Assembly (NCBI GenBank): GCA_907165135.1
Contig: OU015566.1
Span: 1,302,001 to 1,366,000 of the forward strand
Reading direction: 5' to 3'
From: Oikopleura dioica
Taxonomy: Eukaryota > Animalia > Chordata
Length of the DNA: 64,000 bases
In this document: piece after piece, positions 9,319-17,219 of the stretch
Position numbering within the stretch: position 1 is the first letter of the stretch
Layout of the letters: the number at the start of each line of letters is the position of its first letter
Notes under the pieces: generated by a model
What the model was told of the DNA's origin: nothing
Database searches by the model: none
What the model saw: the letters and a program-made list of their open reading frames with translations, nothing else
Program-made: the position numbers and the translations under genes

Positions 9319-12300
9319 TTAAAGCTCGAAGACAGGCTTCTCGCAAATAAGTGATTTATCATCAATGAGTGCTTTTTCACCATCGGCACATGGATTAGGA
9401 CAAGTTTCAATGAAATCGAATGATGTTTCTGAAATTGTTACATCGTTGCAAGTTTTGTCTCCAGTATCCGAATGTTGATTTAATCGACACGTGCAGAAAT
9501 GATCAGAGCTAGAATAAAAGTTATTATGCTTTCTTAGCATTAGTCATACCCAAAGAAATCTCCAATATCGAAACAGCATTGTGGATATTCTGATTGTCCT
9601 GGCAAACATTCCGAGTGATGGACTGTGTTACATTTTGTATTTTTATCATGAGAAGAATTATCTTTGCCATGGCAAAAGCATGGATCGTCAACGTGATATA
9701 CATACTCTGAGTTACAGCAATCTTTATTGATGATTCCTCTGACAGAGTTGCACTTCGCTCTCTTCGGAACACTTGTTCTCTTCCCGGTCTGATGATAAAT
9801 ATACTGTCCAAGACTGAATTCAGATTTATCGGAATCGTGTTTTGCAGAGATCAGCTCTGAAGCAAGTTGGAAACAGTCGCTGTCGACAGATGCATGAATG
9901 GCGTCATCGGAACCGAAGTCAAATTTGAGAGCCCCGCAGCATGATGGAAAACAATCTTTTGAAATATTACATTCATTTGTCACGTCTCTGCAGGCGAGAC
10001 TGTCAGTACTGCCCTCGCATGGATCGTATCTTATCCTTGAATAAAAATTAAGATTTGATGAAAATCATTTTGAAAACTTACCATTGGTCGCATAAAGTGT
10101 CTTCCTTAAAAGTAAGGGAGAAAGTTTCTTTCGCTTTAAGACAGCATTCTCGTTTTTCATGAATACTTCCGCTATTGTAACAATGGCTATAGCCGCATGC
10201 AGAAGCATGATCGGCCTGTTCGTCCACGTCAACAGTTTTTGATTTACAATAAGAACAACCCTTATTTGTGCTCGTGTCACAGCATCCTCCGAAGAAATCG
10301 GCGTTATTGTTGCATTTTGAAAATTTTTGACAAGCAACTGGAGCAGGGGTCTGGATTCGCTTAGCGAATTCGCTCATGAGCGAAGCGAAGCGAAGCGAAG
10401 CGAATTCGCTTCGCTTCGCTTTCGCTTTTTCTAATTTCAATTCGCTTCGCTTCGCTTTCGCTTTTTACCAAAAATTTTCGCTCAAAATTCGCTCAAAAGA
10501 CTTCATTTCCTGAAATGATCAAGGAGAGATCTCCATCTGCTTTACTTCTTTCAAAGCAAAAATTACGCCGCTTACATCTACATCTCGTAGATAATTGTTA
10601 TTGATGATAATTACTTCCAGATTTTACAGCTGCAAAGTTTCATAAAAAGGCGGAATGATTTCCTTTACCATCAAACCAAAAAACAAACAACAAAAATGAC
10701 TTTTATTGTAAAATGCAAACATTGCAAATTTACTTGCAACCGAAACAGTCTTCATCGTCATCTTGTCGCTGACCACTTTATGGATAAAACAGTCAACGCT
10801 ATGAACCACGTAGAACTCGACTGGGAGGATTTCGAAATGGACATCTATTTCAAAGGTGTCCGAGAAAAAAACGGAGAGCTGCAAATTCGAACGTTCTGGG
10901 ACTGCGATAACAAAGACAAAGAAACCTTCCAGAAAACCTTCGAACCTTTCCAGAACTTCATTCTACACGAAAATATCTCCGACGCGATAGAAATTTCTAT
11001 GAAAAAATCAACTGAGAAAAAAGCTGCGATCAAGCTTTCGAATCTTCTTCAAAGCGTCAATTCAGCAAAAGCCGCCATCAAGGACGATCCTGAATGTCAA
11101 ATCTGCTGCAACGAAATCGACGAAAAAAACTTCGCTATCTTTATCACTCCAAATCTCACTGCCTGCCACACAAATATTGCTCACTTTGTCTGCAACTCTT
11201 GCCCATCAAATTTCACTTCTATCCCATCTTGTCCTTTTTGTCGAACAAATGGCAAGTTTGTAACTCTCCGAAAACCTCTCGAATAAAAGAATTATAATCT
11301 CAAAAAACTTTAATGATTTCTTCTTTTTAAAAAGGATTAATTCGATAAAATACTGGCTTCTGATTGGCTTAGGGACCAATTTTCTGGAATCGGCACTTAT
11401 TTAATTATTATTAATTACTTTTCAAGCGAAGTTTTTTTTAACTGTTTATTTTCATAAAATACTGGCTCCTGATTGGCTGGGAGTCAAATTTTCTAGAATC
11501 GGCTGAAGTTTAGTTATTATAAATAACTTTTCAAGCGAACTTTTTTTAACTGTCTATTTTCATAAAATACTGGTTCCTGATTGGCTTAGAGGCAAAATTC
11601 TAGCATTAGGTTTCAACTTGTTATTATGGATAACTTTTTGCGCAAAATTTTCCAAACTGTTTATTTTTATAAAATCCTGTCTTCTGATTGGCTGAGAGCC
11701 CAATTTTCCAGAGTCGGGTGAAAATAAGTTATTATAGATTATTTTTTGCGCAAAATTTTCGATAATGTTTATATTTATAAAATCCTGTCTTCTGATTGGC
11801 TGAGAGCCCAATTTTCCAGAGTCGGGTGAAAATAAGTTATTATAGATTATTTTTTGCGCAAAATTTTCGATAATGTTTATATTTATAAAATCCTGTCTTC
11901 TGATTGGCTGAGAGCCCAATTTTCCAGAGTCGGGTGAAAATAAGTTATTATAGATTATTTTTTGCGCAAAATTTTCGATAATGTTCATTTTTATAAAATA
12001 CTGGCTTCTGATTGGCTGAGAGCCCAATTTTCCAGAATCGGGTGAAAATAAGTTATTATAGATTATTTTTTGCGCAAAATTTTCGATAATATTTATTTTT
12101 ATAAAATACTGGCTTCTGATTGGCTGAGAGCCCAATTTTCCAGAATCGGGTGAAAATAAGTTATTATAGATAACTTTTTGCGCAAAATTTTCTATTATGT
12201 TTATTTTTATAAAATACTGGCTTCTGATTGGCTGAGAGCCCAATTTTCCAGAATCGGGTGAAAATAAGTTATAATAGATAACTTTTTGCGCAAAATTTTC

Positions 12301-15300
12301 TTTATTGTTTACTTCTATAAAATAATGGCTCCTGATTGGCTGAAAGCTCAATATTCTTCCATAGTTCTTGAATTGGATGAGAAATTTCCATTTTTTGCGC
12401 AGAGTTTGTTGCCATATTGATGCTCCCACTTATTTCGAGAATCTAAGAATTTCTTTCATGATTCATATTGCGCAACGCTGGTCCGGATTGCGCGCCGACT
12501 CATACTCGATAAGGATGAAAAGGGAAAACCACTCTTAGGCTTTGCGCAGCCTCAGATTGCCTTTTTCACTCATCTCAAAATGCTGAAAGGGGGGAAAATC
12601 AATTTTCCTCCAAGGAAAAAGCGGAGAGCTGAGCCAGAAGAGATTAGCTCCGACGAAGACAATGAGCAAAATCCGGATGAACCCGGAACTTCAGAGAAAA
12701 AAGACTCGGTAACATGGAAGAGTCTGGAAAATGAGTACGCTGTCCAAAAAGCTCGTAGAGATCTCGACAAAACGAAGTTCCATTTCGACGGGGGAATTGA
12801 AGGCAAATTCGTCAATGGCAAGTACACCGGCGATGTGCGATGCCTTGATCCACGGTGTAAAGCGAAAAAAAAGGAATTCATCTGCCAAGATACCAAATCG
12901 CGCCAACCAATTAACTTGAAGAAACATGCTAGTAAGCTAAGCTTCTATAAACACTTGCGCATTTTTATTCTAGTCACAGTTCATTGCGAAAACAACCATG
13001 TCATCCTGCAGAATCAAGCCCCAATTACAAGTTTCGCGAAACCAAGACAGGTTCAAATCAAAAAAGCGACAAGGAAAAGCTGACGGAGATGGAGGCGACC
13101 ATAATCTGCAAAGAACATCTTCCATTGACATTTTTCGCGAAGTAAGAGTTCTTTTTCTTCCTTGATTTCAAATTGCGCAATTAATAGGGAGTCCCTGAAG
13201 GCTTACAGGGCCCAACTTTTGAGTTCCGTCAATGTCGACCCGCAGTGTCTTGACCAGCTTCACTCCTCTAGCTATCACTACATCAAAGAGGACATGAAAA
13301 AGCAACAAGAGATTCTCCGAACTGTTTTGAAAAAGGAGTTGCCAACATTGCTTGAACAAGGTTTGTCGTTCACAAAATAATTTTGCGCAATCTTCTATTA
13401 GGTTTCTGCGCATTACAAGCCGACCATAAATACATCAAGTCGCGGACACATGAGGATAAGAAGAACGGTATGGCAGTTCTTGTCACCGTGAGCTGCGAAG
13501 AAATCTTCTCATCATTGATTCTGGACTTCCGCGCAACTGATTCGACATCCTATGAGTCCACAAAGAACGATTTCGAAGAAATATTAGACGTAAGTTTCTG
13601 AGCAAATTCTGCGCAAAAGTTCTAGGAAAATTTGCGCAGAATATGCTGTTCAGTCTTGCGCAAAATTAAAACAAAAATTAAGGAATATGGCTTGTTGCCA
13701 TTATGGAGATCCAAGATGGTCGCCCTCGTTGGAGACTCAAAATTCGCCAAATTCGAAGACGACTCCGACTTCATGGTGGTCTGTCTCCTACATACCATCA
13801 ATCGCATCGTCGACTCCATGGAAGAGAAGGCGTACATCTTTGGCATCTACAAGGAACGATTCAAAGCTGTTGACAACTTCATTTCTGCGATCGCCAAGTT
13901 GCGCAAGCCTCTTGAAAGTTCCTCTGAAGATTGTCCACGAACTGTGAACGCGTACCTGAAGAAACTTTCGGAGCAAGGAGTTCCCGCGATCGACAAGAAA
14001 AAGATTCTGAAAGGACGAATGCGATATCCTGAGAAGAAGCTGACAGACGCTGAAATCAAGGAAGATTCATCGGTCAAAAAATTTCCGAAGTTTAGAGTAA
14101 GGCTGCGCATTTATTTATTAAATTCTCATCATCTTCTTTTAGGACCATTACCACAGCATCCGTTTTGGCGCAAAAGCTGAGAAATTCGCAACTCTTTCGG
14201 CAAACATGCGCCAAATTGTTAGCTTGAAGCTGAATCCACCGCTTGGATATTCTCACCTTCTTCATCAAGTCTCGCTCCCAGAAATTCAATTCATCGAAGC
14301 AAATCATTTTTTGCTCAAAGAAATGATGTTTGTGCTCCGGCAAACTGAGAGGAATGATTCGAAGGTATTATTTTTGCGCAGATCTTTCAAAACTAACAAT
14401 TCAAATAGGTTGTGCAGAGTCTGGTGATATACGAAAAGCTGATTATCTTCCTTGTTGGCGCAAAAATGCTGCTCTCGATCACGGTCAAGAACGCGCAGAA
14501 ATCGTCGACAAGTTGGCAAAGACAGCGCTCCAGAAGACTCTCCGTCTCATCTTCGGGAAGTCTTATCTACCAGCCCACAAGAAAATTTCTAAAGACGGAA
14601 AGGAAACCTTCGTGGAAGCTGAAATAAAGACGCTTCATCAAGCTGAGCCTCCGCGGATTTCGAAGCCTCAGATCACGTCGCTCTTCCTCTACTGGCCAAA
14701 CCGAAGAGTTGACCTCTACCGAGCCTGTGAAGCGATTAAAACAAGAGACAACGAAGACTTTTTCTACCAAAACAAGTTGATTCTGGAGGAAGCCGTCACC
14801 GACTGGCAAATAATCGCGAGAAACGAGATCCATCAACTTGCGCAAAAATTGCAATTGGGAGAAGAGCCGGCGACGGCAAGCCAAGTGACAAGAGCGGTAG
14901 CCAATCTAGATGTCTACGATCCACGAGATGCAGTTGCGCAAACTGAACCAGCAAGGCGATCAGAGATGTCTCTTTGGGAGAAAGTTGAGAAAGAAATCAA
15001 CGAGTACTTCAACGATGGTGATCACTGGCGAGCTTGGCTGTCTGCGCAAAATGTCGACTCTCCCAATTCAGAGTCGGTGTTGTTCGAATTGTTCTGGCGG
15101 GATCAGAAGTCAAAATGGCCAATCCTCTCAGCCATTGCGCAAAAGGTAGAGAAATTGTTTTTAAATTTAACAAATAAATAAGTATGCTAACATGCCCGTT
15201 ACGAGCGCGGAAATAGAACGAAACTTCTCCACCATGAGTTACGATTTGGAGAGTGGAAGATCAAGTCAGAAGGCTCAACACACCGGAATGGTAAATCAAC

Positions 15301-17219
15301 GAGCAAACGCAGGCCCATTCGAAGAAGCAATCAAGGAAATCAAGAAGAAGCAAAACAAAAACTAGTTTGCGCATAATTATCACACTGAAAAATTGAAAGA
15401 ATAAAAGATTTACGATAAAACGGCCGTTTCTTTTTGCGCAAAAATGTCTCTGTTGTTTGTTTGTTTTAAGATCACTTATTTTTAAACGAAAATTTCAATT
15501 TTATTCACTTTAAAAATTTCTTCAGAAATTTTCGCTTTTTTTCGCTTTTTTCGAAAAATTTTCGCTTCGCTTCGCTTTCGCTCACGAAATTTTGATTCGC
15601 TTCGCTTCGCTTTCGCTTTTTTTTAAAAAAAAAAATTCGCTTTCGCTTCGCTTTCGCTTTTGATTTTTGGCCGAAATCCAGACCCCTGACTGGAGTCATA
15701 TCAAGACTTTGCTCCTCTCCCCATTTATACCATTCATGAGATTGATAAAGTCCAATACAACAATCTAATATAATCGATGAATAAATAGAAAAACATTTAT
15801 AAAGTTTTTGATATTATAAAAGAGGATATTTTAAGAATTACCAAATGTTTCATCATCATTTCCAGCATTTTTGCATGTATCCTTGTAGTCGAATTTATCA
15901 TTTGAATCCTTACTGCACCAGCCTGTGGTTTGTGCTCCGCAATAATACTCTCTTTGATCATCATTGTCAAGATTAAGAGTATTCCGTTTGTAAGAGCAAT
16001 CTTTGTCCTTGTTAAATTGGCAGCTTGCATCAGAAGGATTATTGATACAGTGGCAATCATGCCATTTGCCATCAGTATAATCAGGTGTGAACTGATTGCA
16101 ACAAAGAGGGTAAGAATCTGATTCAGCATTGCATTCAATTTCTTCTTCTTTGTGCAAGCATTGTGTCCGACCAACAATTTTTTGAGTTGCTTCTTCATAT
16201 CTTGTGAATTCTTCTTCAACATGTGAATATCGGATTTTGCAAGTCAAGAGCCCATTAATTTCAGTAAAACCTTTAGCTGTCTCGAAACATCGCGCATTTG
16301 TTTCACTGAGAGCAAGTTCTCCATCGACGAATTTAGCTGTTTTGATCTTCATATTCAGAATATCTCCCCGTGAGGTTGTTGTATTATGCACAATCGAGAC
16401 AACATAATACGATCCATCAACCAAGTCTTCATCTTTCTCTTCAAATATAACTGGTTTGCCTATTATTCTATCCTCATAACTAGCGTACAAGCTCTCAGCA
16501 GTTGGCTTTTCATCGGTTCCGAAAAGATCTTCTGCTGCATAATTCTTCTCCAATTGAAGGTATGCCATAGGTTGTTCTCTCAGCTTAAAAAACAGGTTGA
16601 CTTCGTCGAAGCATTCATTCTGGACATATTTGAGACCCATGATACCAGTAGCACCAAAGAAAGCAGCAGCGATGGAGAGAACGATAGTTCCACCGAGGAA
16701 CATTCGGAAAGTGATTGATCGACCACGTCGTCGAGTTATGATATCCAAAACGAAAGCAATAACAAGACCACAAATGAAGATCAAAGCAACAGCAAAGAGG
16801 AATGTGTTCAAATAGACACCCGCCTTGAAAACGTTGAAAGTTCGTTCATCGGGTTCGTCTTCGCAGTAAGCAGCAAGAATGAGGGCACCTTAAATTCCGT
16901 TTTAAGATGGCCTTCAAAAATTTCAAAAAGCAACTGAAGAAAAGAAATCGAACTTACCAGCAATAAGAGTCAAAACACCCATGATGGAAATTCCACCGCT
17001 AGCTCCGTCGTCTCCGACATTTTCTTCATCTTCGTCTCCGCTTCCAACTTTCGCACCTCTAGCCCATCGGTTGATGAAGAAGCTCGTTAGTTTGAGACCA
17101 GCGATCGAGACCTGGATTGCAGCAAAAATCATAAAAAGCCACAAATCATCTTGAAAATTTGGCTGCAGACAAAAAATGTAAGCGTCCTGCCACGAAGTAA
17201 CTTCGCGGACAGAACTCAT
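9319..17219 (-). CDS. Multi-pass membrane protein with a long Cys-rich C-terminal region, interrupted inside an exon by the hAT element
   Basis: N-terminal TM helices (17219-16650) followed by Cys-rich exons. Removing 10344-15688 and one TSD copy joins ...EEQSLDMTP to VACQKFSKCNNNADFFGGCC in frame. Confidence 0.8.
10696..11286 (+). CDS. Intronless C2H2-finger plus RING-finger protein carried inside the hAT element
   Basis: CKHCKFTCNRNSLHRHLVADH at the N-terminus; CQIC...CHTNIAHFVCNSC...CPFCR at the C-terminus; 196 aa; AATAAA at the stop. Confidence 0.85.
   Translation: MTFIVKCKHCKFTCNRNSLHRHLVADHFMDKTVNAMNHVELDWEDFEMDIYFKGVREKNGELQIRTFWDCDNKDKETFQKTFEPFQNFILHENISDAIEISMKKSTEKKAAIKLSNLLQSVNSAKAAIKDDPECQICCNEIDEKNFAIFITPNLTACHTNIAHFVCNSCPSNFTSIPSCPFCRTNGKFVTLRKPLE
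11345..12400. repeat. Tandem array of about 10 x 108-bp units inside the hAT element
   Basis: CTGATTGG recurs at 11360, 11469, 11577, 11684, 11792, 11900, 12008, 12116, 12224 and 12332. Most units also contain TTGCGCAAAA. Confidence 0.95.
12580..15365 (+). CDS. Intron-containing hAT transposase
   Basis: BED-like finger (VRCLDPRC...NLKKHA-VH); putative catalytic D in LQADH and LVGDS; CxxH (CLLH); C-terminal KWPILSAIAQK-YANMPVTSAEIERNFS. Two frame breaks (~13050-13080, ~14350-14465) need very short or non-canonical introns, or are homopolymer frameshifts. Confidence 0.9.

Follow-up and report, generated by a model that had tools for sequence, protein, structure and literature searches.

The stretch analysed here, 64,000 nucleotides from Oikopleura dioica (contig OU015566.1, referred to as C4, positions 1302001-1366000; the window hereafter), contains a DNA transposon, designated W, that carries two genes on the same strand. 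Element W measures 5,345 bp and occupies window positions 10344-15688, between two copies of the terminal inverted repeat (TIR) CAGGGGTCTGGATT. This exact 14-bp motif is found at 10344-10357 on the plus strand and, inverted, at 15675-15688 on the minus strand; these are its only two matches in the window, and two matches occurred in none of 100 shuffled sequences. The element is flanked by the duplication ACTGGAG (10337-10343 and 15689-15695), of which seven base pairs match while base eight differs, whereas the sister elements A, B and C described below all have a perfect 8-bp target-site duplication (TSD). Within the TIRs, an accessory open reading frame (ORF) of 196 amino acids runs without introns from ATG to TAA at 10696-11286 (plus strand), beginning 352 bp inside the left TIR, and is followed on the same strand by a hAT transposase gene of about nine exons at approximately 12580-15368. 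An earlier note on this DNA had described an intact 196-aa ORF inside the TIRs, upstream of and co-oriented with the transposase, and the ORF list, the TIR pair and the zinc ligands of the encoded protein all agree with that description. In this study I argue that the ORF is probably a resident accessory gene of a larvacean hAT lineage, co-inherited with the transposase and encoding a chromatin-directed ubiquitin ligase (E3) that serves the element. I favour this reading because of the linkage of the two genes in W, A, B and two metagenome contigs, the selection acting on the accessory gene, its divergence in step with the transposase, and the contrast with a true passenger, a piece of an SMC6-like host gene, in element A.

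The accessory protein consists of a C2H2-like finger (residues 7-27, nt 10714-10776), a chromodomain-like fold (residues 46-106, nt 10831-11013), a long helix (residues 108-130) and a RING (residues 134-183, nt 11095-11244). The motif AATAAA at 11282-11287 on the plus strand, a candidate poly(A) signal of the accessory gene, overlaps the stop codon. The same GAATAAA arrangement is observed at the accessory stop in element A, and in element B an AATAAA lies about 55 nt past the stop. From the accessory ORF to the ATG of the transposase the distance is 1.3 kb in W, including a tandem array, and about 3.5 kb in A, including the SMC6-like fragment. The transposase starts from an ATG of its own and includes a BED-like finger exon, and an arrangement as two transcription units is favoured. 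The intronless state of the ORF was considered as evidence for a retrocopy and dropped, as a coding sequence of 590 bp is uninformative in this respect.

In the genome searched (64,281,565 bp in 19 contigs), the accessory family is found at three loci with an expect value (E) of 1e-8 or lower, W, A and B, with one additional noise match at E 6. All three loci lie inside hAT elements with different TIRs, upstream of the transposase and on the same strand, and no copy of the family was found in the genome outside hAT elements. Element A (C5:3440952-3449432, 8,481 bp) is bounded by the TIR CAGGCATATAAATT and the perfect 8-bp TSD GGTATAGA, and its accessory ORF of 202 amino acids, 569 bp from the left end, is followed downstream on the same strand by a homologous transposase. 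Element B (C5:8456576-8461828, 5,253 bp; TIR CAGTGTTGGAAAA, perfect 8-bp TSD ATCCACGG) has an accessory ORF of 247 amino acids at 749 bp from its left end, and the 3' half of its transposase is colinear with the exon hidden Markov models (HMMs) from W, A and C, with matches down to E 2e-7 in a small local database that include an hATC motif of the SCEAEREF type. Element C (C5:9176002-9179695, 3,694 bp), which has perfect TIRs CAGGGTTCTAAATC, the TSD CCCGCAAG and subterminal GTCGAG repeats, encodes a related transposase and no accessory gene. Full-length W is single-copy in the genome. Non-autonomous derivatives, dozens of them at 80-97% identity, repeat only its first 170 bp or so and its last 180 bp or so, and element B likewise has many such derivatives.

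The accessory proteins of W and A are 40% identical, and those of W and B 24%. For exon 7 of the transposase, the identities are 36% between W and A, 30% between W and C and 22% between A and C, while the transposase of B is far more distant and can be detected with the exon HMMs only. The divergence of the accessory gene is thus close to that of the transposase (40% versus 36% in the comparison of W with A), which argues for a long co-inheritance.

Beyond this genome, an exhaustive profile search of 1.84 billion representative proteins retrieved 25 at E <= 0.001, about 20 of which look like family members, the last few rows being probably unrelated RING proteins. The members that were looked up are unnamed, and those that could be traced come from marine metagenome or run assemblies. 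Neither a host parent nor a named viral relative of the accessory protein was found in the genome or among these representative proteins. A word-based protein search returned only the accessory protein itself and one metagenome fragment of 148 amino acids; a metagenome scan with the four-member alignment gave no matches, and one with the B-like members gave only three short contigs that were already known. Two metagenome contigs bear on the linkage with the transposase. Contig L035 starts with GCGAA repeats of the W type and carries an accessory ORF 81% identical to that of W and cut at codon 144, past which the sequence partly resembles the last transposase intron and the start of an exon (a 15-bp match and a comparison by eye); if this resemblance holds, L035 would be a classic internal-deletion derivative. 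On contig L044, the predicted protein P0009 joins an N-terminal portion of a B-like accessory protein to sequence from exon 7 of the transposase (41% identity, E 7e-16). Judged by sequence, the accessory gene and the transposase appear linked in at least five independent elements (W, A, B, L035 and L044). Searches for TIRs and TSDs in the metagenome contigs L043 to L050, which include those of the distant members P0007, P0012, P0016 and P0022, found none.

The comparison of W with L035 over 144 codons gives 0.105 non-synonymous substitutions per non-synonymous site (dN) and 0.90 synonymous substitutions per synonymous site (dS), and hence a dN/dS of 0.12. The differences fall at codon positions one, two and three 18, 11 and 48 times, respectively, and the upstream non-coding sequence is 76.5% identical with 7 gaps, compared to 82% for the coding sequence. 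By these sequence measures, the accessory gene is under purifying selection. The proposal in the earlier note of a two-gene hAT system is therefore strengthened, as the ORF is present in three diverged hAT families and two metagenome derivatives, always with the transposase, and at a dN/dS of 0.12. The same note had named occurrence in one copy only, neutral evolution, and a match to a normal single-copy host gene outside the element as findings that would speak against such a system; the ORF is instead found in three families in the genome, shows the constraint given above, and has no copy outside the elements.

In the W protein, the finger has the zinc ligands C7, C10, H22 and H27 and the RING has C134, C137, C157, H163, C166, C169, C179 and C182. 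These ligands are kept in all family members that cover them, with position 166 being Cys or His across the family. An AlphaFold model made from a 13-sequence alignment (mean predicted local distance difference test score, pLDDT, 87.7; predicted template modelling score, pTM, 0.73) shows the N-terminal C-x2-C-x11-H-x4-H motif as a beta-beta-alpha finger. A search of the PDB with the family profile retrieved RNF4 (E 1.9e-6), HRD1 (2.4e-4) and EL5 (3.3e-4), then Arkadia and RING1B, whereas Pfam RING matches of single sequences fall short of the cut-offs, the best in the family having an E of 1.1e-4. In an exhaustive structural search, model residues 125-194 match the RING of MDM2 (Z 5.5, root mean square deviation, rmsd, 2.4 Å over 58 residues), MEX-3C (Z 4.8) and BIRC7 (Z 4.6), and almost all of the top 50 rows are either RING/U-box or chromodomain/chromoshadow structures; Foldseek with the accessory model against the PDB gave weak RING rows only, at E >= 0.05. 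Ile136, which follows the first Cys pair, Pro180, and Arg183, which follows the last Cys, are present and largely conserved, and in known RINGs residues of these types contact the ubiquitin-conjugating enzyme (E2) and ubiquitin. Judging from sequence and model, the accessory protein is likely a RING E3 ubiquitin ligase.

The middle of the protein was overlooked in the earlier note, which had read a C2H2 finger and a RING, both of which stand, the former as C2H2-like. Model residues 46-106 have the chromodomain fold, a three-stranded sheet against which a C-terminal helix packs, and match chromodomains with Z 4.2-4.9, namely those of Chd1 (chromodomain 2), CBX4, Oxpecker, Rhino, HP1, Polycomb, CBX7 and Chp1; for Chd1, CBX4, Rhino, HP1, Polycomb and CBX7 the rmsd is 2.2-3.4 Å over 50-59 residues. 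An alignment with host chromodomains by hhalign is in register (P 0.004, probability 8.6%), and the distant family member P0016 matches Pfam Chromo at E 3.8e-4 (20.8 bits, cut-off 25.1). A six-frame scan of the genome with PF00385 found 47 host matches, none of which is at the accessory loci of W, A and B. With respect to the aromatic cage, Trp68 is nearly invariant, and an aromatic residue near position 46 can be seen by eye in most members, the column being variable as aligned; some chromodomains bind with two aromatic residues. Sequence support being thin, I regard the middle domain, on its predicted structure, as chromodomain-like and not as a member of Chromo.

Several observations weigh against an element-serving, chromatin-directed E3. 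The W sequence alone stays below every Pfam RING cut-off (best match zf-RING_5, E 0.022), and C3 and H4 of its RING are spaced by five residues, compared to the canonical one to three. Structural Z scores between 4 and 5.5 are middling, as expected for domains of 55 residues. At E <= 1, Pfam Chromo (PF00385) matches none of W, A and B, and the third cage position, located three residues past Trp68, has Asp, Leu or Asn in place of an aromatic residue. Furthermore, element C has no accessory gene, which implies that the gene is not indispensable in cis. Element C may either have lost it or rely on other elements in trans; loss is the simplest reading, B being the outlier and having the gene, but with four unrooted taxa this is a weak preference. 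Finally, each of the RING-bearing elements occurs only once in this genome, so that the autonomous copies need not be mobile at present.

What a passenger looks like in this lineage can be seen in element A, where a segment of about 2.9 kb copied from a host SMC6-like gene, introns included, lies between the RING gene and the transposase at approximately C5:3445282-3448188 (L036:6283-9189). It has 95% nucleotide identity to its parent at about C2:8,183,600-8,186,900, the last exons of which match SMC6 at E 2e-11 and Pfam SMC_N at 1.8e-7. From its sequence, this fragment is a Pack-type capture of part of a gene and a true, recent passenger. It shows the look of a recent capture, and the RING gene, for which there is no such parent, is in this respect unlike a passenger. 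The SMC5/6 complex restricts extrachromosomal DNA in mammals, and it may be no accident that a RING-bearing hAT picked up part of SMC6. A role of the accessory protein as Nse1 or Nse2 of SMC5/6 was considered and dropped, as it found no support and the SMC6 fragment in A is a recent DNA-level copy with introns.

The SMC6-like fragment demonstrates that this hAT lineage does capture host DNA, and the accessory ORF, being intronless, could likewise be a captured host gene or retrocopy, a transduplicated passenger without service to the element. The earlier note had offered a captured retrocopy or viral gene as one possibility. However, the genome holds no parent for the ORF, and the 1.84 billion representative proteins contain only short marine-metagenome relatives, with no named virus among them. 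Moreover, three hAT families with different TIRs hold the gene intact at the same place, with a divergence similar to that of the transposase and a dN/dS of 0.12, which is not what is observed for the SMC6 capture. A passenger is therefore improbable. Selection could also act at the level of the host, if the elements were immobile fossils in which the RING protein, alone or together with the transposase, had been domesticated. That each RING-bearing element is single-copy would fit such a history. However, the elements retain intact TIRs and target-site duplications, non-autonomous derivatives with ends 80-99% identical are numerous in each family, deletion derivatives are present in independent metagenome samples, and the same pair would have to have been domesticated three separate times. 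I consider domestication, too, an improbable explanation.

Alternatively, the ORF may not be a gene of its own: splicing or read-through transcription could join it to the transposase as an alternative upstream exon or as an N-terminal module. Strand and order are alike in W, A and B, and in RAG1 a single chain holds both a RING and zinc-finger module and a core derived from a transposase; a search with Atlas features also gave N-terminal fragments of RAG1 at 0.85, which is a lead only. However, in W as in A an AATAAA runs across the stop codon of the ORF, the ORF is separated from the start codon of the transposase by 1.3 kb of tandem repeats in W and by about 3.5 kb with a foreign SMC6-like piece in A, and the transposase possesses an ATG and a BED-like finger exon of its own. 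A single chain of this kind seems very unlikely.

If the hAT lineage does carry the ORF as a resident accessory gene, the product of the ORF would be made from its own transcription unit and would be docked on chromatin or on element DNA by the chromodomain-like domain and the finger, where the RING would recruit a ubiquitin-charged E2, leading to the modification of a nearby protein. It would then act in trans for the transposon, as a chromatin-directed or element-directed ubiquitin ligase, and the element could benefit either from the licensing or directing of transposition at particular chromatin, or from the removal of a host silencing factor. The location of the gene, its conservation and selection, the identity of the RING and the predicted folds can be read from the sequences and models, and ligase activity, chromatin binding, a substrate and the benefit to the element are what I infer from them. 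Licensing or direction of target choice and anti-silencing appear about equally likely as roles, and turnover of the transposase, suggested in the earlier note, less likely. More specifically, the system could be a two-component hAT in which a chromatin-reading RING ligase licenses or directs transposition or disarms silencing, in parallel to the reader of RAG2 and the RING of RAG1, and to viral E3 ligases, which destroy restriction factors. By analogy with these systems this is a tentative proposal, and I would sooner doubt it than rely on it.

To my knowledge, hAT elements are described as single-gene elements with a transposase only, and no published description of a two-gene hAT was found in the literature searched. 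Two-component DNA transposons exist in PIF/Harbinger (with a Myb-like ORF1), MuDR (mudrB) and En/Spm-CACTA (TnpA). The present elements, in three families, resemble these in that a second element-encoded protein is kept beside the transposase within the TIRs, but they belong to another superfamily, and the second protein is a RING/chromodomain-like one and not a Myb/SANT DNA binder. The N-terminus of RAG1 is a RING E3 with a zinc-finger module, the PHD of RAG2 reads a histone mark, and ProtoRAG is a two-gene transposon, this system being derived from Transib. Here too, a DDE transposon comes with a reader-like fold and a RING. However, the superfamily is unrelated, and a small protein apart from the transposase unites the reader-like domain and the RING; the score of 0.85 in Atlas features with RAG1 is a lead only.

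In chromoviral integrases, a chromodomain tethers integration to marked chromatin, so that a chromodomain-type fold in a transposable element is not without precedent. Fusions of hAT and Chromo are described in the sponge Ephydatia muelleri (bioRxiv 10.1101/2021.11.30.470311). In both of these cases the chromodomain forms one protein with the integrase or transposase, and a RING is not reported with them; in the accessory protein, unlike hAT-Chromo, the fold is seen by predicted structure only, with Pfam blind to it and the cage incomplete. With RNF4, HRD1, MDM2 and RING1B, the RING of the accessory protein shares the C3HC4 cross-brace, the profile match to RNF4 and the structural match to MDM2 given above, the hydrophobic E2-contact residue and the Arg after the last Cys; it differs in its N-terminal architecture and its longer loop between C3 and H4, and it is not orthologous to any named E3. 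As hAT is among the largest superfamilies of DNA transposons and has provided gene-transfer tools in wide use, a conserved and selected accessory gene would alter the one-protein picture of these elements. It would also add the case of a mobile element coding for a ubiquitin ligase that has a chromatin-reader-like domain, and would bear on target choice or escape from silencing by transposons in a genome as compact as that of Oikopleura.

The exon-intron structure of the transposase was assigned by hand, and homology searches were done on single exons. The approximate exons are 12580-12931, 12974/12980-12999, 13032-13141, 13188-13360, 13402-13589, 13626 (or 13680)-14096, 14143-14364, 14420-15145 (referred to as exon 7) and 15183-15368. 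The introns are canonical GT-AG introns of 32-55 nt, one of which has an ambiguous acceptor giving either 36 or 90 nt, lengths that suit a compact genome, and the frame stays open, such that the transposase of W may be intact as far as its sequence tells. Single exons gave almost no matches to Pfam. The last exon alone matches Dimer_Tnp_hAT (PF05699) at E 0.017 with 15.3 bits (cut-off 21.4), an intron splitting this domain. A profile of exon 7 searched against PDB sequences gave a chance match only, but the best of 48,161 chains to its predicted structure (pLDDT 66) is the Hermes transposase 8edg_A (Z 8.0, rmsd 4.0 Å over 105 residues), followed by a chain at Z 5.5. The Atlas features of exon 7 point towards the hAT-like_RNase-H (0.91) and Dimer_Tnp_hAT (0.90) clusters. 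The TIRs measure 13-14 bp, and those of W (CAGGG), B (CAGTG) and C (CAGGG) start with YARNG, while that of A (CAGGC) deviates at base five. Because of the half-match to Dimer_Tnp_hAT, the Atlas features, the fold match to Hermes and the 8-bp TSDs of the sister elements, W can be assigned to the hAT superfamily with high confidence.

The remaining sequence of W is largely repetitive. GCGAA and GCGAAA repeats at 10358-10490, next to the left TIR, are candidate binding sites for the transposase; repeats of this type are also found at the other end of W (15500-15670), within element A and where L035 begins. Between the accessory gene and the transposase, a tandem array at 11345-12356 consists of 9.4 copies of a 108-bp unit with an 88% match, and every unit contains an ATTGG (CCAAT) box and the palindrome TGCGCA. 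The latter occurs 26 times in the 5.3 kb of W, where about 1.3 would be expected at equal base use. This array may serve the transposase as a promoter or enhancer. A 126-bp tandem array lies downstream of the gene for the distant family member P0022, at L045:5476-5732.

Long ORFs on the minus strand flank W at 9540-10440 and 15831-16811 and resemble parts of one host gene, and W may be inserted in or beside a host coding exon. Counted by eye, about 40% of the matches to the W-type termini are on contig C3 (2.9 Mb, about 4.5% of the genome), which may be the repeat-rich Y-specific region described for O. dioica. Another hAT transposase is found on the minus strand at about C4:382,800-385,200 (L065:6768-9164), and on the opposite strand a spliced gene adjoins it (C4:~381,400-382,100; L065:5411-6108), the pair spanning C4:381410-385163; the product of this spliced gene combines a finger at the N-terminus (C-x2-C...H-x4-H) with a C-terminus rich in Cys; as the HMM of the RING family has no match to this gene at E <= 1, no homology is claimed. 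Element B, finally, sits within a copy of another, palindromic miniature inverted-repeat transposable element of about 600 bp (C5:8456318-8462181; L037:4319-4576 and 9830-10182), which has many copies in the genome with 80-99% identity.

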